Assembly: GCA_033442325.1 (NCBI GenBank)
Contig: JAWQFM010000015.1
Coordinates: 188,843 to 252,842 of the forward strand
Direction: 5' to 3'
Source of the DNA: Salpingoeca rosetta
Taxonomy: Eukaryota > Protista > Choanoflagellata
Length of the DNA stretch: 64,000 nucleotides
Part shown: piece by piece, positions 1 through 26,861 of the stretch
Numbering within the stretch: the first letter of the stretch is position 1
Layout: each line of letters begins with the position of its first letter
The notes under the pieces: model-generated
Database searches by the model: none
What the model was told of the DNA's origin: nothing
Seen by the model: only the letters and a program-made list of their open reading frames with translations
Position numbers and translations under genes: made by a program

Positions 1-3000
1 TCGCTTGCACAGCGCATCGCCGAGGACGTGTGCTTCTCGCTCGATGGCGCGCCACCCCCAGCAGGCGCCAGTGATGGTGATGCACAGGGGGGCGCTGTGG
101 CCGGTGGCGAGGAAGCCGCCGTTGAAAGGGCCACTACCACCACCGCCACCATTCGAGACGGTGAACGGAACAGCAACAACGGCTCACGTGGTGGTGGTGG
201 TGGTGATGCACATGATGGTGCAAGCAGCGACACTCCCTCCCAACAGCAAGAACAGTCCCAGGCAGCGGTAGCAGCAACACTGGTGGAGCCTCGCCCACGC
301 CTGCTGCAGGCGTTTCTGCTGGACACGGAGGCCAACCCCGCACGATCCTATGCTGTGCATCGACTTGTGGAGCGGTGGGTTGAGGCCGGTCTGTACATGG
401 ACGCGTACATCTTCTACTCGGCGACAGAGGGCACCACTGCGCCCATCACGCACGACCGCCTGCTGGAGGCGTACATTCGCTTTGACAAGCAGGCGCAGTA
501 CCAGCTGCCCGACTATGTGCGCCGGTTCCAGAACAAGGTGCTGGGTGCCCAGGTGCTGCTGGAGCACTTGCACGTGCTGTCGATGAAGGATACGCTTGAC
601 CTGCTCCACCTCTTCCATGAGCACCTGTCTGAACTGGCCAGCAGCGTGGAGCGCGTTGATGCCGCCATTGTGTCGTGCACACATGCACTGCACGTGCAGC
701 AGCTGCGGGCAACGGCAGCTACCATCAGTCGCCGCCTTGACCAGATGCGCTCCTTGCAGAAGATTATGGTGGCGTGCGAGGATCTCTTGCCCTCGTGGCA
801 GTCGCTTGTCCGCGTTGCAGCGCAGAGCCGTGTTGCTCGCGACGTGGCTGCAGGCAGTGACGGTGGCGGCATGTGTGCGGGCGCGGGTGCCACGGACCGG
901 TGCCTTGCCAAGTGTGGGTATGTGCCCGTGGCCACGTGCGATGCCCGTGACTGCTTGAGTGTGGGCGACACGACGTCCACCTTCGCCCGTGTGGGTGCTG
1001 GACGCAAGGGCCTACAGGCCTTGCCTGGCACAGGGAAGCGGGGAGCGAGTGCGTGCGGTCCCGGGATCGGCAGTGAAGATGCTGGTGTGGGCGCGAGCGA
1101 GCGCGAGTCGATGGATGACCTGCAGAACCTGATTCTCTCCACGCTGTTGAAACGGCACGAGTTGGCGCTGGCGAAGGAGTGGGCAAAGATGCACGACAAG
1201 GACCAGAAGGTGGTGTGGATGGGCCACATTGACAACATGCTGCAGCAAGGGCAGGTTGAGCGCGCCAAGGATGAGCTGGGCGGGCTGCCGGCTGCTGTTG
1301 CACTGGAGACGAGCTACGCCCTCCTGAGGAAGATGTTGCTGGATCGAATCGACAAGCACCACCACGACCGCCGCCACCGCCAACACCAACAGCAGCAAGT
1401 GGCGGGTCAGCGGTCCCAGTCGCGGTCCTCTGGTGCAGCGTCCACGTCAGCGGCCGGCAGCGTGGTGTCGAGTTCGTGGCGCTCGGGCACGACACATGAG
1501 GGCTACGCGTCGTCGTCAGTTGTCTCCTCATCACGCGCCAACGGCACCTCTGGTGTGTCCACAAGCGTGGGCATATTCACAGCACCACACGGCAGCGGCA
1601 GCGGCAGTGGTGGTGGCGGTGGTGGCACACGCACGCACTCGTCGGCTGCCTCGGGTGTATCCATGTCGTCCACGACGGCAGCAAGTGAGAGGCGATCGGG
1701 CGCTGGCAGTCGGGGCACAAGCAGCGGCGTGCACTCTGTTGCGCCTTCAAGTGTCCACGTCCACGGCGGGCAAGGCGCCCAAGGAGATCAAGGCAATGAA
1801 GGTGCAGGCAATGGAAATGACGGCAATGGAACGAAGCGGAGGCTGTTTGGGCGGTTGCGCAGGCTGGGCAGACGCAAGGGCAGAGGAGGAGGAGGAGGAG
1901 GCAATGGTATCGATGAGAGTGATGTGCATGGGGACGAAGGCGAAGGCACTGGCAGTGACAGTCCCGGTGTTGCAAGTGAGGTTCAGCAGGGTGTCCCAAG
2001 CGATGGAGAGTGGGTGCGTGTGGAGCAAGAGGAAGGCCGGCTGGTTCGCGCGCCATATCTCAAAGGCCTGCTGATGCTGTGCGATTTCCTACTTGAGAAC
2101 GCGCCCACATCGACACCAAAGAAGAAGAAGAAAGCAGCGAAAACGGCGACAGACACGGCTGCAGCACCGACTGCAACGCGTGAGGGCGCCCCACACAATG
2201 GTGTGGAGTCGACCGCGTCTCCTTCCAGAGTGCAGAGCGACAAGAAGACCCACAGCACCGCAGCAGCAAAGGGAGCAAAAAAGATAGCGCCCGGCAAATC
2301 GTCCACGTTGCGCTCCACGCCCCCATCACCGCCATCGTCGTCGTCAGCAGCAGCAGCAGGTGGTGGTGGCGAGAGCGTTGATTTGGCGCGGGTGCGTGAG
2401 AGCCGGGTTGTGCTGACAATCTTGGTGACGGTGCCCATGCGTCTGCGCGCATGCCTGCTGCCACTCACTGCCTCTGCGCCGCGCATGGTGGAGCAGCTGC
2501 TTGTGCTGAGCGAGACGCGCGTCGTCGCCACGGTGCTGGGTGCACTTGACAGCAAGGCGCGTGCGCTGGCGCTGAGCATGGACGGTCGAGATGACCTCAA
2601 GTACAACCTGCCGTGCATGCCTGCGGAGGAGGTGGATGCGTGGGAGTCGTCGTCGTTTGCATCGCACAGCGGCGTGAGCACAAGCAGCATCGCCACACCC
2701 GCTCGCAGCACAAGCAGTGGCGCTGTTCGCGACAGACGCACCCCACAACAACAACAACAGCAGCAGCAACAGCTGTCGCAGTCACAGCAGCCATCGCAGT
2801 CTGGCAAGAAGGGGCGAGCGCGCAAAGAGCCCCAGGTGACCATCTACGGCATGCCGCCGGCACCGACGGAGACAGCAGACGCAGCGCCCGCAGGGCCCTC
2901 TCCTCGGCAGCAGCGCATTGATCGCGCTGTTGCGTCGTGTGATCTGCTGCTGTACTACGCACGCAAGGCGATGAGCGTGGGGGAGACCAGCACTGCGCTG

Positions 3001-5991
3001 CTTGGGATGGAGCGGCTTGCGCCCGATGTGGCGAGTGCAGGCGACGGCTCTAGCCAGGCCACCATTACGCCGTCGACACCGGCCTGGGGGCGTGGCAGCG
3101 GCGGCGGTGCTTTTGGTGGAGGACGTGTTGTGGAGGAAGAAGAGGAAGAGGAAGAAGAGGAAGGCGGGTTTGATACGGACACTGAAGGGTTTGAGGTTGT
3201 GCGCCGGGGCAGAGTCGATGAAGCTGGCCAGAGCATGTATGCCGACGAGTATGGGCACATGATGGTGACGTTGGACGAGCGGGTGCGCGTTGCGTTGGAG
3301 ACACGCGAGCAAATCGTGCGGCGACGGCGGTTTGAGTACATGCCCCACCCGGACTTTGTGCTGTGCTCGATGCTGCTGGACATGCACCCTGACGCGGCCA
3401 AGACGGCGCAGTTCTGCCTTGATCTTGCCCACGACCTGTCGACGCTGCTTGTGCGCGGGCTTCGCGTCGACCTGTACTCGCTCACCACCTCCATCTACCA
3501 GCTGCTGTACATGGCGCGCGTCAAGTTCAACAAGGTCAACGACGTGGAGCGGGACGCCGTGTCGCAGGTGCTGCTGCGCCGCGCGGAGCTGCTTCGCTTC
3601 CTGGTGGCCAGCAACGTGCATCGCCGCTTCCTGCTCTCGCTTGACGCGTTGGCGCGGCCGGAGTGTGTGCGCAGGCTGCAGCTGCGCCTTCTCAAGCAGA
3701 AGATGTTCAGTCTCGCGTGCAGGGTTGCACTCAAGTGCCAGGTGAGTTGTTGGTGATGGTGGTGGTGGTGGTGGTGGGATTGTGTATGTGGTGGTGGGGT
3801 TGTGATGCTGTGTGGTGTGTCCTTCTGTGCTGCTGTGATGCTTTGTTTGCTGCCTTGTCTCACACCCAATTTCGGCCTGCTGTGCTGACGCCTTCACGAC
3901 GCTCTTTGCACACTGGTCATGCTTCGCCACACACTCCCATTCCCCCACACTGCCCAACAATTCTCCCTCCCGTCTTATTGCCGTGCTTCAGGTGGACGAC
4001 ACGGATGCGCTGATGCAGTGGGGCATTGAGCTCCTGCGCGTGCGGTCGTACGACGAAGCGCGCGAAAAGCTCGATAGCGCATTACGCAAGACAACACGGA
4101 AGCCCAAACACTTGACGGACATCTTGCGTCATCTTGAGCAGGCGCCCACGCTTGAGATCCAGCCGCCGGGCGACGACAGCGGGGACTTGGCGTTTATGTG
4201 TCAAAACCTGCGACAACTCGCACAGACAGCAGCAGCGCAGCGCAACCGCGGGGGCGATGTGGGTGGTGGTGGTGGTCGGAGACAACGCAAGGCGACAAGC
4301 AGCAGCAACGGCAACAGCAAAAACAGTCGTGGCGGTGGTGGGGTGACACGCTTACCGGCTGATGCTGAGGGCCCGCTGGCTCTTCGTGCAGAGACACACG
4401 GGCGTGTGAGCATGACGAGTCACTTGAGCAGGCAGCAGCTGCTGCTGGCGCGCCACCTGTGCACGCAGGCGTGCAACTGCCCCGACAAGCTGCTTGAGTT
4501 TTACGTGAAGCACGGGCTGTACGATGCGGCGGTGCGGATGGTGCTGCATGAGCGGCTCGACCCGTCCCTCTTCCACGAGTTTGTGCTGTATCCCGTGCTG
4601 TCGACACGGCGCCTGGCCGGGACGGTTGGGTTTGAAGAGTGCGCGACCGACCTCGACGCGCTGCTGCAGTGCATGGAGCTTGAGGCTGCGCCCCGGACGA
4701 AACACGGCCTGGCGAAGACGGAGGGGCGGCGGCGGTGGTTGCCATATGTCCGCGTGTCCTGTCACCGGCTGCAGGATAGGCTGCAGGTGATGTACAAGTT
4801 GCAGCTGTTTGCGGACGACCACGTGAGCGCGGTGTCGACGTGCGTGGGTTTTGCCACGCAGGCCGGGCTGAGCATGCACCAGCGCACGCAGTGGTACGAG
4901 CAAGCGGAGAAGCACCTGGAGGTGGTGGTGTCTGTGGACAAGGCGGCGTTATCTGCACCGCCACCGCCATCGCCGACGCGCTCGCGCACTTCCGGCGGAA
5001 CCATGTCCAGCAGCAGCGTGGCTTCAGCCGGCAGCGGCAGCAGTGTTGGCGGTGTTGGCAGCACGACTGCGCGCACTGCTGGACTGAGCCATCCTGGGAC
5101 GGCACGGTCGCGGGAGGAGGTGACGCTACTGCAGGCGAAGGTGCAGTGGCAGCGGCTGGCGGCGACGGTGTTCAACGAGCACATGCAGGCCATCCGAGAC
5201 AGCGGGGAGGGCCGGATGGAGGACGTGGAGAAGCTCATGCAGCTGAACGTGTTCAAGTCTGTGGCGATGGCGCGGCAGCTTGCCATTGAGCTGCTGTGTC
5301 GCTCCACCGCGAGCACAGGCGTCATCTTCAAGAACGTCCTGTCCATGATCCGACACCTCAAGCTCGGCATGTGGGAGGTGTTTTCCAGCACATGCAACCG
5401 TCTCGCCTCCGAAGCAGAGGTGTGTGTGGTGGGGGGGGGGGAGGGGGAGGGAGGAGAGGGAGGAGAGGGAGAAAGGGGTTTGTGTGTGTGTGTGTGTGGA
5501 AGGGTGTGTGTACCAACATTTGTGTGTAACAACACATACACGATCTTTCAAACGTTTCACGTGGTGTGCACACCTTGCTTTCTCACATGAACCTACGCCA
5601 CCCTTGCTTTGTCTTCCTCCTCTTCCTACTCCTCCCTCTTTGTCGATGATAGACTGCGCGGCTGAAGGAGCTGTTGGACCGGATGAAAGGCGTGATGACG
5701 GATACGAGTGCGCTTGACAAGCTGCTGCGCCTGTGCGCGACGGTGTATCTGAAGCGGCACAACTCGCAGGGTACGGCGCATTTCTTCGTGAACCGCATGT
5801 TCTCGGACAACTTCAAGGTGACGACGCTGCTTGAGCTGGACATGGCGCGACAGGCGTACAAGGCGGCGATTGAGAGCGCGGACAAGGTGACGAATGTGCG
5901 GCGCGTGCTTGCTGCTGCCCTGGCCCTCAACAAGAACGCCACCATCACCCGCTGCCAGACGTGGCTCAAGAACCATGCACCAGCAGAGTAG
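1..5991 (+). CDS. ZFYVE26: Spastizin (ZFYVE26/SPG15)-like protein, 5'-partial; exons <1-3741, 3992-5419, 5653-5991
   Basis: FEYMPHPDFVLCSMLLDMH...LLYMARVKF...LSLDALARPECVRRLQLRLLKQKMFSLACRVALKCQ|VDDTDALMQWGIELLR...AREKL parallels the spastizin C-terminal region (YEQAPSASLC...SLDQIL...RLRNQLL...AWGMACLK...AREKF). GT-AG introns 3742-3991 and 5420-5652 join three ORFs in frame. Confidence 0.8.
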
Positions 5992-20056: not shown

Positions 20057-20125
20057 GCACACATGCACACACACACTTTTCTTTGAGCTCTCAGAATAAT
20101 ACACTGCTGCGTCATTATCACGACC

Positions 20126-21060
20126 ATGTCCTGCTGTCCACGCAAGCCGGCTGACCGCGTCGCGCGCATGAACCCGCAGCAGCTGCGGAACTGGCTTCAT
20201 GCAGAAGGCATGGCGCGCCAAGCCGACCTCCTCGACTCTGTCTCCGGTGGCGTCCTTGTGCGCAGCGTGTCCCAGGATCCTGCTTGGCTCACCACCAACC
20301 GCAACATGCCAGCGCATCTCAGCGAGACGCTGCTGGATGCGCTTGGGCTCGATCCCGCCCCTTCACCGAAAGCAGCAACGCAGCTCAAGCAGCTGGAATT
20401 GGACGCTCTTGACGCTGATGATCGCCCGCAAGCGCAGCCAGCTGGCCGTGTCGTGCTGACCGCGTGGGACGATGATGGAACGCCACAAGCTCGCGACAAG
20501 AATGCCACAACGCAGCCGGATGCAGCTGCGATTGGACCAGACTTGCAGCCCGCGGTTCTGGCGCTCGAAACCTGCGAACTCCCTGAGCCACCCGCGACAG
20601 ACAAGTCCTCATGGGGCAAAGTGCTGCGCACGACAATCGGCACCGTCGTCCGCAAGGCCGTGCCCACAATGGTGGAGAAGGCAGCAGAGAGCCTCCCGTT
20701 TGGGTCCCTCGCCGTGACACTGTGCACGCAGACGGTGGCTCGCGTGTCCCAGATGAAGGAGAATCGAGCACTTGCGGAGGAGCTGGCCCGCCGGGCCCGC
20801 AAGATCTCCAAGCACGGCCGTGTGCTCCTCGTGTACTTCCAGGCAGAAGACAGCCCTGACGGGCTTGAGGAGGCGGAGGAGCTGAGCGAGCACACGTTCT
20901 GCTCATTGCGCCTCGTCGTTGACGCCCTCAAGCCCGGTGTCAAGAGCCGTATCCTGCGCTTTTTGAGCTGCGATGACATGGCAGATGGGTTCGCTGAGGC
21001 AAACAAGCGCATGATGGACGCCGTTGGGCTGGTCAACCTCATCTACAACAGCACGCAAGC

Positions 21061-21107
<47 letters not shown>

Positions 21108-24100
21108 TACGGTCAACACCACCAGCAGCAGCAGCAACCGTGCGCTGGAGGTTCTGCATCAGTGCAAGGCACAAGCAGATGCCGTGGCGTTTTGGAGGGA
21201 CAACTGCTTTGGCGACGAGGTCAGCGTGCTTCTCTTACTGTCAGCGCTTAAGAGCTGGGTCCGCCGATCTGGCCACGTCCGCGTGTCGGCAGCGCTCCAC
21301 CTGGCAGACATCCCGGAGCTCTATGCCTTCTTTGCTGGCAAACGCAACCGCGAGACTACGACAGTGCACCACTTTGCCGACTTTCTCGGCGACGCAGCGT
21401 CGCTCGCCCATGCACTGTCGCCTTACCTGCCAGGCGATGAGAACCGTGAGCATGAGGAAGCAACAACAGCTACGACCACAGCAACTGCAGCAACAGCAGC
21501 AGCAACAGCACCCAAGACGGGTCAGCAGCCCCGCCGCACCCCAAGGCGCGTGACATCGCTTCGTCAACCAGCCTTCACGGCAGAAGGAGACGACGACACC
21601 GCCCTCAACGTCCACCTGCACGAGGCCCTGCAGCCTGTTGACTTTGGACAGGATCTGGTGAAGCATCAGAAGGCGTTTGCAGAAGGCACGCGCGAGTGGG
21701 TGTTTGACGCCTTTGAGACGTGGGCGCGGAAACCAAACACAGACCAGGACGCCCGCGTGTTCTGGGTGGAGGGAACGGGCGGGCTCGGCAAGTCGGTCAT
21801 TGCCGCCCAGTTTGTGAAGCGGTACGCTGACGGTACCTCGTCGCACAGCACGTCAGACAGCACGCGACCGCTCCTCGCAGCCCACTTCTTCTGCAAGCAC
21901 GATCACGCAGACCGCAATGACCCGCGCAAGGCCATCGCCACTCTCACCTTCCGCCTCGCATCGCAGCTGCCTTCGTTGCGGCAGAAGTTGCTGGACATTC
22001 TCAAGGACGAGGAGCAGCGGGACAACTTTGTTGCCCACGCGCACGGCACCAAGGGCAGTGTGGGTGACGCGTTTGACGTGCTGCTGGCCGACCCACTGCG
22101 CGAGGCACTCGACAACCGTGACACGCACGACGGCGACATCTTCATCCTGGTTGATGCGCTGGATGAGCTGCGTGATGGCAACAGCCGTGCACAATTCCTT
22201 CGCCTTGTGGGCAAGCAGCTGCCTTCGCTGCCACCGTGTGTTCGCATCATCGTCACGTCCCGCCCGGAGGAGGACATTCTTGTGTTCTTCAAGAACCTCA
22301 ACCCGTTTAAAATCGACAAGCAGGATCGACGACAGCGCGAGGATCTGGAGCTGTACACGCGGCAACGCATCGTGGACGGCACCAGCCTACACAAGCTGTC
22401 GGACGCAGACAAGGACGCCGTTGTGAAAGCGGTCGTTGACAGAGCGGATGGCGTGTTCCTCGCCGTCGCCTTGGTGGCACGCGCCTTGGAGGAGCTGGAC
22501 GAGTCTACCAAGCAGCCATTAAGGCCAGCGGATGTCGACGCTCTGCTCGCCAGCTCTGGCGGCAGCATCGTTGACGGCACGTACACGGAGACGCTGGACC
22601 GCATTCAGACGCGACTCAACCAGGCAGCCACTGGTGAGGAGGGCGTTGACGAGGAGGTGCTGGCAGCACTCCAAGGCACCCTGCACAACGTGCTGGCGGC
22701 GATTGTGGCTTCCCGCCAGCCACTGCACGTGGAGGATTTACACGAGCTGTGTGGTGGTGATCGGGTGCAGAGCAAGGCGCTGACGAAGCGGCTGCTAAGC
22801 GCGCTGTCGCTTCTCTTCTCCAGCAGCAGCAAGCACGACGTGATTGAGCCCCTGCACAAGACCGTCAACGACTTCCTCACGGACAAGGACCGCGCTGGCG
22901 CTCACTTTGTGGATGTGCGGGAAGGCCACGCCATCCTCACTCGTGCGTGCCTGCGCGTGCTGCAGGACCGAGGGCTTCTGAGCGGATCACGTGATCTGTT
23001 GGCGCCAGGCAGTGGCGTCCTGGACGAGCCCATTACCAAGTATGCGCTGGAGCATGGCCACATGCACTTGTACGAGTGTGCACGAGCGCTTGCAGACAAG
23101 GCAACAGGCATCGATATCAAATGCCCTCGACGGGCGGGCTCGGCAAGTCGGTCATTGCCGCCCAGTTTGTGAAGCGGTACGCTGACGGTACCTCGTCGCA
23201 CAGCACGTCAGACAGCACGCGACCGCTCCTCGCAGCCCACTTCTTCTGCAAGCACGATCACGCAGACCGCAATGACCCGCGCAAGGCCATCGCCACTCTC
23301 ACCTTCCGCCTCGCATCGCAGCTGCCTTCGTTGCGGCAGAAGTTGCTGGACATTCTCAAGGACGAGGAGCAGCGGGACAACTTTGTTGCCCACGCGCACG
23401 GCACCAAGGGCAGTGTGGGTGACGCGTTTGACGTGCTGCTGGCCGACCCACTGCGCGAGGCACTCGACAACCGTGACACGCACGACGGCGACATCTTCAT
23501 CCTGGTTGATGCGCTGGATGAGCTGCGTGATGGCAACAGCCGTGCACAATTCCTTCGCCTTGTGGGCAAGCAGCTGCCTTCGCTGCCACCGTGTGTTCGC
23601 ATCATCGTCACGTCCCGCCCGGAGGAGGACATTCTTGTGTTCTTCAAGAACCTCAACCCGTTTAAAATCGACAAGCAGGATCGACGACAGCGCGAGGATC
23701 TGGAGCTGTACACGCGGCAACGCATCGTGGACGGCACCAGCCTACACAAGCTGTCGGACGCAGACAAGGACGCCGTTGTGAAAGCGGTCGTTGACAGAGC
23801 GGATGGCGTGTTCCTCGCCGTCGCCTTGGTGGCACGCGCCTTGGAGGAGCTGGACGAGTCGAGCAAGAAGAGGAAGTCCCTCACACCGGCGGATGTTGAT
23901 GCTCTGCTCGCTGGGTCCGGAGCCAGCATCGTTGACGGCACGTACACGGAGACGCTGGACCGCATTCAGGCGCGACTCAACCAGGCGGCCACTGGTGAGG
24001 AGGGCGTTGACGAGGAGGTGCTGGCAGCACTGCAAGGCACCCTGCACAACATGCTGGCGGCCATTGTGGCCTCCCGCCAGCCGCTGCGCGTGGAAGATCT

Positions 24101-26861
24101 ACATGTGCTGTGTGGTGGTGATCGGGTGCAGAGCAAGGCGCTGACGAAGCGGCTGCTAAGCGCGCTGTCGCTTCTCTTCTCCACCAGCAGCAAGCACGAC
24201 GTGATTGAGCCGCTGCACAAGACCGTCAACGACTTTCTCACGGACAAGGGGCGCGCTGGCCCTCACTTTGTGGATGTGCGGCAAGGCCACGCCCTCCTCG
24301 CTCGCGCATGCCTGCGCGTGCTGCAGGACCAAGGGCTTCTGAGCGGCTCACATGGGCTGTTGGAACCAGGCAGTGACGTCCTGGACGAGCCCGTCACCAA
24401 GTACGCACTGGAGCATGGCCACATGCACCTGTGCGAGTGTGCACGAGCGCTTGCAGACAAGGTAACAGGCGAATCAGGGCATGGCACCGACACTGAGGCC
24501 AGCGCTGCTGTTACTGCGAGTGCTAGGCAGAGCGTCGAAGCGTGGAGCGAAGTGTTGTTGCAGCCTCGTCGTGGGGACGATCCAATGTTGGCGCAATTCA
24601 CTGGCACGGGTGTATCGCCAACGGAACGCGAGGCAACGGCAGCCATGGCGCAGTGGCTGCTGCTGCAGGCGTATTCTGCAGAACGTGGACGGCCCCTCAT
24701 GAAGGAGCTGGCCGAGCTGGCCACAGCCCTGCTCGGTGTGGACAATGACATGTATCAGTTGCTTGATGGCACAAGCTCCCTTTTCGGAGAACACTGGGCG
24801 CCGAGGCTGAGTGAGGATGAGGCCTTGCGACGTGGAGCTGGTTGCTTCCTTGGTGGCATACCGTTGCAATCACACTGGTTCGCTTCACAGGCGCAGCGAA
24901 CACTGGCACGAGCAGCAAGAACGAATCGCTGCCTTCTGCGCATTCCGAAGGTGCTTGCCCGCAGCCCCTGCAAGTTGGTCATCACTGGACACTCGAGTGA
25001 GGTCACCTCTGTTGGGTTCAGCCCTGATGGAACACGTGTGGTGTCTGGAAGCCATGACCAGACGGTGCGGGTGTGGGACGCACGGACGGGAGAGCAGCTG
25101 ACACAATGCGAGGGGCACACGTTTTCTGTCACCTCAGTTGGGTTTAGCCCTGACGGGAGGCGTGTGGTGTCTGGGAGCAGTGACAAGACGGTGCGGGTGT
25201 GGGATGCGAGGACGGGCGAGCAGCTGACGCAGTGCGAGGGGCACACGAGTCGTGTCAACTCGGCTGGGTTCAGCCCTGATGGGACGCGTGTGGTGTCTGG
25301 GAGCGGCGAGACTTACGGGAAGAACGACGACAACACGGTGCGGGTGTGGGATGCGCGGACGGGTGAGCAGCTGATGCAGTGCGAGGGGCACAGAATTTGT
25401 GTCAGATCGGTTGGGTTTAGCCCTGATGGGACGTGCGTGGTGTCAGCTGGGGGCACAACTGTTCATGAGCCCGATTATTCATACTCCTGGGTGGAAGTCT
25501 CGGGCGTGGGCATGAACATCCGAATCTGGGACGCATGGACGGGAAGACAAACCCAAGAGCTGAAGGGGCATTCTCTCCCCGTCACTTCGCTTGCGCTGAG
25601 CGTTGATGGAACGCGTATCGTGTCAGGCAGCGAAGACCATACGGTGCGGGTGTGGGACGCACGGACGGGAGAGCAGCTGACGCAGTGCGAGGGGCACACA
25701 CGTGTTATCCAATCAGTCTCACTGAGCACTGACGGGACGCGCATCGTGTCTGGAAGCAATGACGAGACAGTGCGCATTTGGGACGCGACCACGGGTGCAC
25801 AGCTCGCCCAGCGCGACGGGCACACAAGTGGTGTCTCCTCGGTTATGTTCAGCGCTGACGGGACGCGCATAGCGTCTGGGAGCTCGGATGGCACGGTGCG
25901 CGTCTGGAATACGTTTGTGAGTGAGGATGTCGATCGGTGCGGCAGATATGCCTCGCATGTGAATGTGGTTCGTTTCAGCCCTGATGGGACGCGCATCGCA
26001 TGTGGGAGCAGGGACGCCACTATTCGCATTTTAGATGCTGTCACGGGGGAACAGTTGGGCCGGTGTCACGGCCATTCTGGAGAAGTGACCTCAGTGGCAT
26101 TCAGTCCTGATGGAGAGCACGTTGTGTCTGTTGGAGGAGAGGAAGATACAGGCGAGGAGATTTTGCATGTGACACCACGAGACAACACAGTGCGTATCTG
26201 GGACACGCGAACTGGGAAACAGCTTGCTGAGTGCCAGCACCAATGCGCTTGGGATGAGTGTTTCACGTCAGTCGCATTCAGCCCTGATGGAACGCGTGTG
26301 GTGGCTGGGAGCAGTCACACGACGGTGCGCATCTGGGACGCACGGACGGGTGAGCAGCTGCATCAGTGCAAGCGGCACACGGATTGGGTCACCTCAGTTG
26401 GGTTTTGCCCTGATGGGACGCGTGTGGCGTCTGGGAGCGATGACAAGACGGTGCGGGTGTGGAATGCACGTAATGGCAAGCAGCTGTCAAAGTGTAAAGG
26501 ACACATGGGTCGTGTCACCTCGGTTGCCTTCAGCCCTGATGGGACGCGCGTGGCGTCTGGGAGCGATGACAAGACGGTGCGGGTGTGGAATGCACGTAAT
26601 GGCAAGCAGCTGACACTGTGCGATGGGCACACGCGTGGTGTCTTCTCGGTTTCATTTAGTCCTGATGGGACGCGTGTGGTGTCTGGGAGTCGTGACAACA
26701 CAGTGCGAGTATGGGACGCGGGCAGCGGGGCACAGCTCATTCAAAAGGACACGTACATTGGCAATGTCAATGTGGTTCAAGTAAGTGCTGATGGGACACG
26801 TATTGTATCTGGGAGCGCTGACAACACCGTGCGGGTGTGGGATGTGGAGACGAATAAGTGA
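20126..26861 (+). CDS. NLR-like NACHT-WD40 (HET-E/NWD-type) locus, no coding introns seen, split over three frames (20126-~21105, ~21061-23109, 23130-26861); disrupted as assembled
   Basis: Motifs GTREWVF, Walker A GTGGLGKS, AAHFFC, Walker B ILVDALDE, RIIVTSRPE, GVFL and LHKTVNDFLTD, followed by 14 GH...SPDG...SGSxDxTVRVWD repeats. Confidence 0.9.
21057..21106 (+). repeat. (CAG)n tract at the first frame switch of the NLR-like gene
   Basis: Reads poly-Q in the upstream frame and poly-A in the downstream frame. Confidence 0.9.
21775..24470 (+). repeat. Tandem duplication of the NACHT region, 21775-23109 and 23130-24470 (offset 1355)
   Basis: The first ~730 bp appear identical (matching ORF translations in several frames). 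The remainder is diverged. A 20-nt non-matching linker lies at 23110-23129. Confidence 0.95.
24988..26858 (+). repeat. Array of 14 WD40 repeats (mostly 126-bp units) with high DNA-level similarity
   Basis: Recurring agccctgatgggacgcgtgtggtgtctgggagc...acggtgcgggtgtggga blocks. Confidence 0.95.

Follow-up and report, generated by a model that had tools for sequence, protein, structure and literature searches.

An architecture in which a HeLo-like domain is followed by a NACHT domain and WD40 repeats is frequent among the NOD-like receptors (NLRs) of fungi (Dyrka et al. 2014, PMC4986451). In the MLKL-like and Goodbye-like domains of basidiomycetes, one additional helix precedes helix h1 and a short one sits between h3 and h4; killing by these domains is itself unproven (Wojciechowski et al. 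2022, PMC9815663). In the choanoflagellate Salpingoeca rosetta, proteins that combine NACHT with WD40, ANK or TPR repeats have been counted, and in the same surveys bona fide NLRs were judged to be absent from choanoflagellates and no N-terminal effector domain was described (Yuen et al. 2014, PMC3879445; Richter et al. 2018, PMC6040629). Here we analyse a candidate NLR-type gene at positions 20126-26861 of the + strand of a 64,000-nt stretch of S. rosetta DNA (C15:188843-252842, referred to below as the window). Our results show that the locus belongs to a family of NLR-like STAND (signal transduction ATPases with numerous domains) proteins that is small and centred on choanoflagellates, and that the window copy, as assembled, cannot make the full receptor chain. 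The explanation that fits best overall, a family-member NLR with a helical bundle of the MLKL/HeLo type, of which this copy was recently inactivated, has in our judgement an even chance of being right as a whole. The original prediction for this locus had held that its combination of domains was unknown elsewhere. A combination of this kind was already known, because the HeLo-like–NACHT–WD40 order is common in fungi.

The evidence that the architecture is genuine comes from paralogs. A check proposed with the original prediction was to look for intact copies in choanoflagellates, and a search of the S. rosetta genome (55.4 Mb in 68 contigs) found three, in addition to partial ones. The paralogs bear NCBI names of S. 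rosetta ATCC 50818 (XP_004987796.1, PTSG_10743 and PTSG_12916). The family loci are as follows.

C4: intact paralog, a single open reading frame (ORF) of 1661 amino acids with the same domain order.
C4:958k: intact paralog, a single ORF of 2084 amino acids with an MFSCCG start.
C23: intact paralog, a single ORF of 2385 amino acids with an MFGCCG start behind an upstream leader.
C4:2.49M: family locus with an ORF of 1593 amino acids in which the C-terminal half of the bundle is followed by the bridge and NACHT domains and the WD40 array.
PTSG_10743: SAM domain and bundle only.
PTSG_12916: bundle, bridge and a NACHT whose P-loop is degenerate.
C15:316500-326400 (C15:322k), minus strand: 5'-truncated paralog fragment, 113 kb from the window gene and abutting a 3.7-kb run of N.

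Since the intact paralogs carry the same domain order in single ORFs, the architecture is real in this genome. The fragment on C15 is about 90% identical in the winged-helix region and aligns to an intact paralog only from residue 689 onward. The family undergoes gene birth and death. The intact paralogs and the 1593-amino-acid locus are single ORFs of 4.8-7.2 kb that run without a frame break, and several contain very long CAG (polyglutamine) tracts. If choanoflagellate genes are generally intron-rich, unbroken ORFs of this length are unusual.

The family as a whole is small. With a profile built from five bundles, only 28 proteins were found at E<=0.001 among 1.84 billion cluster representatives; those with a named source come from S. 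rosetta and Barroeca monosierra, and the others are metagenome or Logan assemblies. The relatives have in common the bundle, the bridge, an NPHP3_N/NACHT domain, a TANC1-like winged helix and WD40 repeats. The layout of the family is an acylation motif (often), a SAM domain (in some S. rosetta members, and absent from most members of the family), the bundle with extra N-terminal helices, the bridge, an NPHP3_N-type NACHT in which Walker A and B are intact, the winged helix and two WD40 propellers. Among environmental variants, one has NPHP3-type TPRs instead of WD40 repeats and another has a PH-like insert that separates the winged helix from the WD40 repeats. This layout resembles that of the fungal HeLo-like, MLKL-like and Goodbye-like NACHT–WD40 NLRs in the order of bundle, NACHT and WD40 repeats of high internal identity, in the turnover of its paralog families, and in the neighbours of the bundle in language-model space, which are mainly fungal clusters (PMC4986451, PMC9815663). 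With the basidiomycete MLKL-like and Goodbye-like domains it shares the additional helix preceding h1, the short one between h3 and h4 and the non-terminal position of h1. Unlike the fungal proteins, the choanoflagellate family has no Pfam match to HeLo, Helo_like_N, SesA or Goodbye. It also has a conserved bridge of about 100 amino acids between bundle and NACHT and, upstream, acylation motifs, the motif LPEPP and in some members a SAM domain, and its host is a choanoflagellate.

In the window the same modules are present in a broken arrangement. All the peptide strings quoted in the original prediction are found on the + strand of the locus, in three overlapping + strand ORFs that each have their own frame: ORF1 (20126-21553), ORF2 (21184-23172) and ORF3 (23076-26861). 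The features of the locus, in order, are these.

20126-20137, + strand: N-terminal MSCC read from the sequence, a candidate S-acylation (palmitoylation) signal by its likeness to consensus motifs.
20153-20350, + strand: SAM-fold domain, amino acids 10-75.
20351-20536, + strand: linker, amino acids 76-137, predicted to be disordered (predicted local distance difference test score, pLDDT, 33-64), with no conservation among paralogs.
20537-20692, + strand: two pre-bundle helices of model 1 (amino acids 138-148 and 160-178), with the LPEPP motif at 20579-20593.
20693-21058, + strand: four-helix-bundle core, amino acids 190-311.
21059-21138, + strand: break 1, (CAG)15 at 21062-21106 and a further 32 nt; in this interval the reading frame moves by -1.
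21139-21440, + strand: bridge domain (FW..GF .. ETVT..RF), conserved in relatives.
21685-22269, + strand: NACHT copy 1, of the NPHP3_N type (Pfam), with Walker A GTGGLGKS at 21772-21795 and Walker B at 22138-22167.
22684-22947, + strand: TANC1-like winged helix behind NACHT copy 1 (Pfam HTH_TANC1, 25.8 bits against a cut-off of 27).
21776-23110, + strand: copy 1 of a tandem duplication, which begins within the Walker A codons.
23111-23130, + strand: 20-nt filler at the duplication joint, with an ATG at 23121-23123 in frame with ORF3.
23131-24471, + strand: copy 2 of the duplication, NACHT from the P-loop on and winged helix, continuous with the WD40 array.
23170-23172, + strand: stop codon that closes the ORF2 frame, 40 nt past the filler.
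24975-26858, + strand: 14 WD40 repeats in two propellers (Pfam WD40; direct-repeat families D1 and D2).

Effector, nucleotide-binding oligomerisation domain and repeats are thus not found in one uninterrupted frame at this locus, but they are in the paralogs of 1661, 2084 and 2385 amino acids. The proposal of a sensor, switch and executioner in one chain therefore fails for the window copy, which is split over three frames by two lesions, and holds for its intact paralogs.

The first lesion lies beside the CAG tract. Relatives share the frame of ORF1 (frame 2) up to 21058 and follow frame 1 from 21139, at the family motif preceding FW. The switch from frame 2 to frame 1 falls between 21059 and 21138, in or just past (CAG)15. 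Frame 1 is the -1 frame of the tract, translates it as polyalanine and is open from 20998; the tail of ORF1 beyond the tract is out-of-frame sequence. The first methionine of ORF2 appears only after about 640 codons, so ORF2 is readable only as a continuation of ORF1. The -1 frameshift beside the CAG tract uncouples the bundle from NACHT as assembled. An intron bridging this break was ruled out, the sole GT..AG pairs of the right phase being 20-29 nt apart. Slippage of ribosomes into the -1 frame has been reported on long CAG tracts of human polyglutamine disease genes, and programmed frameshifting of this kind could join ORF1 to ORF2, whose frame is exactly the -1 (GCA) frame of the tract. 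The tract has just 15 CAG units, however, the paralogs do without any frameshift, and the second lesion would remain, so that we regard this explanation as extremely improbable.

The second lesion is a tandem duplication within NACHT. The segment 21776-23110 recurs at 23131-24471, with an offset of 1355 nt that is not divisible by three. The copies agree completely over their first 730 nt; over the remaining stretch of about 600 nt they are about 90% identical, with 63 differing positions. Because the duplication is out of frame, the first NACHT copy runs into the stop codon at 23170-23172, and the first NACHT is uncoupled from the WD40 array as assembled. NACHT copy 2 starts inside Walker A, and the strand that should precede it is absent; translation from the ATG in the filler would likewise yield a NACHT that begins at the P-loop. 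Between the diverged halves of the duplication the ratio of nonsynonymous to synonymous substitution rates (dN/dS) is 0.28, so both halves derive from genes under selection. In contigs of run X10 the identical piece (21775-22505, 731 nt) has roughly twice the depth, and its ends coincide exactly with the borders of the repeat; the two diverged halves also occur there, with zero differences (including 22793-23050). The depth and the unaltered halves suggest that the duplication is real.

The window copy is probably a young pseudogene. It would then be a recently inactivated gene within a family subject to birth and death. The RNA data are concordant with near silence. In three RNA runs from 2026 the depth over the locus is at most 1. 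Pile-ups at 22655-22850 and 24034-24230 consist of reads that are 95-99% alike and have a loose end matching the C23 paralog, so the C23 paralog is expressed and the window copy is nearly silent in those runs. The conserved winged-helix segment draws such cross-mapping reads. A few RNA reads that are at least 99% identical occur in run X15, mostly over 20094-21472. No splice joints were seen in the three RNA runs, whose coverage of the locus is too sparse for a test of the lesions or of splicing.

Several observations weigh against a pseudogene. The call depends on one assembly, the RNA is too thin to test the lesions, and ORF1 and ORF3 are otherwise stop-free. None of the four words sampled across the 20-nt joint was found in any listed public run, although 13 listed runs contain other parts of the locus, and the joint itself is therefore unconfirmed. 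It has to be considered, then, that the gene is intact in the organism and encodes a normal member of about 1750 amino acids, the frameshift and the NACHT duplication being errors of a scaffolded assembly. The N gaps in the window indicate that the assembly is scaffolded, all three ORFs are clean outside the two lesions, and repeat tracts and exact repeats of 730 nt are places where assemblers classically struggle. We nevertheless consider this unlikely. The double depth of the repeated piece, its exact borders and the unaltered diverged halves in X10 argue for a true duplication; a 20-nt filler is not something that assemblers normally invent; the protein search gave no annotated protein of 694-2207 amino acids from the locus; and the locus is nearly silent.

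A second way to retain a functional product is for ORF1 to work alone as a SAM and bundle protein like PTSG_10743, a gene of just this composition in the same genome, while the NACHT–WD40 part is dead or is separately started at the ATG at 23121. ORF1 has its own start codon and a stop at 21553, the filler ATG is in frame with ORF3, and the few closely matching reads of X15 lie mostly on ORF1. A depth of at most 1 does not establish expression, however, a protein started at 23121 would be without the strand preceding the P-loop, and the tail of ORF1 beyond the CAG tract is out of frame. We think this improbable, and retain the young pseudogene as the preferred reading of the window copy.

The switch and the repeats are the most firmly identified parts of the protein, and here the calls of the original prediction were borne out. 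NACHT in ORF2 matches NPHP3_N (PF24883) at E 3.7e-25 and 89.4 bits (cut-off 24.8) and NACHT (PF05729) at 27.5 bits (cut-off 26.7), and NPHP3_N/NACHT matches above cut-off are likewise present in eight relatives. Both STAND motifs are present, Walker A as GTGGLGKS and Walker B as IFILVDALDE. The winged helix falls slightly below the HTH_TANC1 cut-off at the locus and above it in relatives. The WD40 array of ORF3 has 14 Pfam stretches (E 4.9e-139), again as predicted, in units of 126 nt that are 60-83% identical in DNA. The units share a near-identical scaffold, ..SPDGTR.VSGS.D.TVRVWDA.TG.QL.., with insertions in three units. They vary mainly at the three residues after GH, at the residue between V and S and at the SGS-x-D-x positions, in a pattern that resembles fungal HET-E-type repeats.

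The region between bundle and NACHT had been described as EF-hand-like, and this part of the prediction found no support. The bridge domain is kept in every full-length relative; in the 11 relatives compared, F18, W19 and F79 are invariant. In 11 members it matches neither EF-hand nor any other Pfam family, and it gave no profile match to the Protein Data Bank (PDB). On a reading of the sequence, neither candidate loop carries the acidic ligands of a calcium-binding EF-hand. A language model leans instead to a calponin-homology domain, at 0.87, which is below the trustworthy level.

The N-terminal part was modelled with AlphaFold2 (model 1, amino acids 1-311, from a 23-row alignment), with a mean pLDDT of 83.5 and values above 90 in both domains. 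The SAM-like segment proposed at amino acids 10-75 has the five helices of a SAM fold, although no SAM family (SAM_1, SAM_2) was matched by Pfam at E<=0.1. Residues 138-311 form two helices and then a four-helix core: h1 (192-207), h2 (214-240), h3 (244-268), a short helix (275-279) between h3 and h4, and h4 (285-310). A conserved basic patch lies on h2 (20786-20821). The short pre-bundle helix and its L-P-E/P-P-P motif are kept in most relatives (more than 12, from several sources); this element, which directly precedes the bundle, might serve for docking or as a lid. The N-termini of relatives read MFGCCG, MFSCCG, MGICYS, MGGKFS and MGGGCS. The Cys-Cys or Gly2(+Cys) starts of many members, to which the MSCC of the window copy may be compared, suggest N-terminal acylation and a constitutive membrane anchor.

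The original prediction identified the helical region as an MLKL/HeLo/RPW8-like bundle. For amino acids from about 190 to 311 this is the best available reading, and we consider that the bundle probably belongs to the MLKL/HeLo/RPW8/Goodbye superfamily. Four independent lines, each weak, agree on it. First, MLKL_N (PF22215) is the top sub-threshold Pfam match of ORF1 (E 0.013, 15.5 bits against a cut-off of 27), over protein residues 201-326 and profile positions 9-131 of 142. Second, the language-model neighbours of the window bundle are an MLKL_N cluster (0.94, 203 of 256 features) and Basidiomycota, RPW8, SesA and Goodbye clusters, and a Barroeca-type relative has the same pattern. Third, the top natural matches of model 1 in the VIA structural search point to the same superfamily, at scores that designed bundles and dynactin equal. 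Fourth, an ESM Atlas shape search with residues 139-311 ranked plant MLKL kinases, MCAfunc and DUF7032 proteins highest.

A number of results count against this assignment. No match above cut-off was obtained to PF22215, PF14479, PF17111 or PF05659; MLKL_N appeared at E<1 in only 2 of 20 members, and the other families of the set (HeLo, Helo_like_N, RPW8) in none. Foldseek with both models against the PDB gave nothing at E<=0.001, the top rows being nuclear-receptor and assorted helical proteins at a root-mean-square deviation above 10 Å. When amino acids 150-311 were modelled alone (model 2), h1 and h2 merged into one long helix; the wide VIA search with this model gave generic bundles only, with vinculin-tail, FAT and talin as good as any, and the atlas shape search gave only bacterial helical proteins at TM<0.52. 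The family profile found no MLKL among PDB sequences. A search of the family alignment against the short proteins of a 5.8-billion set gave none at E<=1, and is uninformative owing to the word prefilter. Finally, h1 starts at amino acid 192, behind the SAM domain, the linker and two helices, while the MLKL, HeLo and coiled-coil (CC) domains start at the extreme N-terminus.

These results also fit a different origin, in which the helical domain has no relationship to MLKL, HeLo or RPW8 and acts as a generic adaptor, and the family is a non-immune STAND scaffold of the cilium, collar or cytoskeleton, comparable to NPHP3 or TANC and without a role in cell death. The NPHP3_N type of the NACHT, the TANC1-like winged helix, the NPHP3-type TPRs of one relative, the calponin-homology lead of the bridge and the equal fit of model 2 to vinculin-tail, FAT and talin bundles are all in line with this, and every line of evidence for MLKL is sub-threshold. 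On the other side, the four lines set out above agree on one superfamily, fungal NLRs also carry an NPHP3_N-type NACHT, and the family has traits like those of immune receptors, in that paralogs turn over, gene fragments occur and the WD40 units are closely alike apart from a few variable positions. We therefore judge a generic adaptor to be less probable than not by a clear distance, though a serious competitor, and keep to the MLKL/HeLo/RPW8/Goodbye assignment as the working one. That the bundle also damages membranes is a tentative proposal to which we give somewhat less than an even chance.

For the intact members a mechanism may be modelled on those of MLKL, of the HeLo-like NLRs of fungi and of the RPW8-type helper NLRs of plants (PMC4986451, PMC9815663). 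The WD40 propellers would keep the protein closed, and their variable surface would bind the trigger. NACHT would then exchange nucleotide and oligomerise. This would cluster the N-terminal bundles at the membrane, to which they may be pre-targeted by the acyl anchor, by the basic patch on h2 and perhaps by self-association of the SAM domain, and the two upstream helices may serve as a lid that must shift first. The clustered bundles could perturb the membrane and so cause ion flux or lysis. Lipidation, ligand sensing, oligomerisation, membrane damage and necroptosis-like killing are all steps that we infer from these analogies. We speculate, as an idea with the odds against it, that choanoflagellates keep working single-chain NLR-like receptors in which an acyl-anchored bundle of the MLKL/HeLo/RPW8 type responds to triggering of the WD40 repeats by killing or depolarising the cell.

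The proposed system differs from each of its non-fungal counterparts. Compared with the N-terminal domain of MLKL (PF22215; PDB 4btf, 6ux8), the bundle scores below the family cut-off, is preceded by 190 residues where that of MLKL begins at residue 1, and is placed under NACHT–WD40 where MLKL is under a pseudokinase and RIPK3; its killing activity is putative. The plant RPW8-type CC-R helpers NRG1 and ADR1 (PDB 7l7v) have NB-ARC and leucine-rich repeats in place of NACHT and WD40. Neither to these nor to plant MLKLs (6ka4) is there a match at the sequence level, and the structural match to NRG1 draws on the two upstream helices of the model. In SARM1/TIR-1, a death effector whose oligomerisation is driven by SAM domains, these form a tandem pair and are joined to TIR; here the SAM domain is single, there is no TIR, and most members have no SAM domain at all.

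The NACHT-plus-repeat proteins of the S. rosetta surveys are the same genes as this family, at the level of counts. In the literature searched we found no paper that describes the bundle–NACHT–WD40 family. What appears to be new is the occurrence of this architecture in choanoflagellates, the added modules (acylation motifs, SAM, LPEPP and the bridge domain) and a divergent bundle family that lies outside every Pfam model. The family supplies the choanoflagellate NACHT-repeat proteins with a candidate executioner like those of fungal NLRs, plant helper NLRs and animal MLKL. Confirmation would mean that the closest relatives of animals have a regulated lytic death that is controlled by STAND proteins. 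The design of a STAND switch with a four-helix executioner, seen in fungi and plants, would then already have been present in the holozoan stem, and animals would have lost or split it, retaining MLKL under kinase control. As S. rosetta is genetically tractable, the idea can be tested directly on the intact paralogs. The window copy serves mainly as an example of rapid birth and death in the family, and cautions against reading this locus as one chain.

Some further observations concern other parts of the window and the genome. Two long GC-rich ORFs at the start of the window (28-3756, 1242 amino acids, and 3983-5590, 535 amino acids) have zero Pfam matches. The sole Pfam MLKL_N match of a whole-genome scan, at C7:798254-798625 (24.1 bits), falls in low-complexity DNA beside CA microsatellites and was rejected as probably spurious. 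A PH-like protein of S. rosetta has the SAM domain alone in common with the family.

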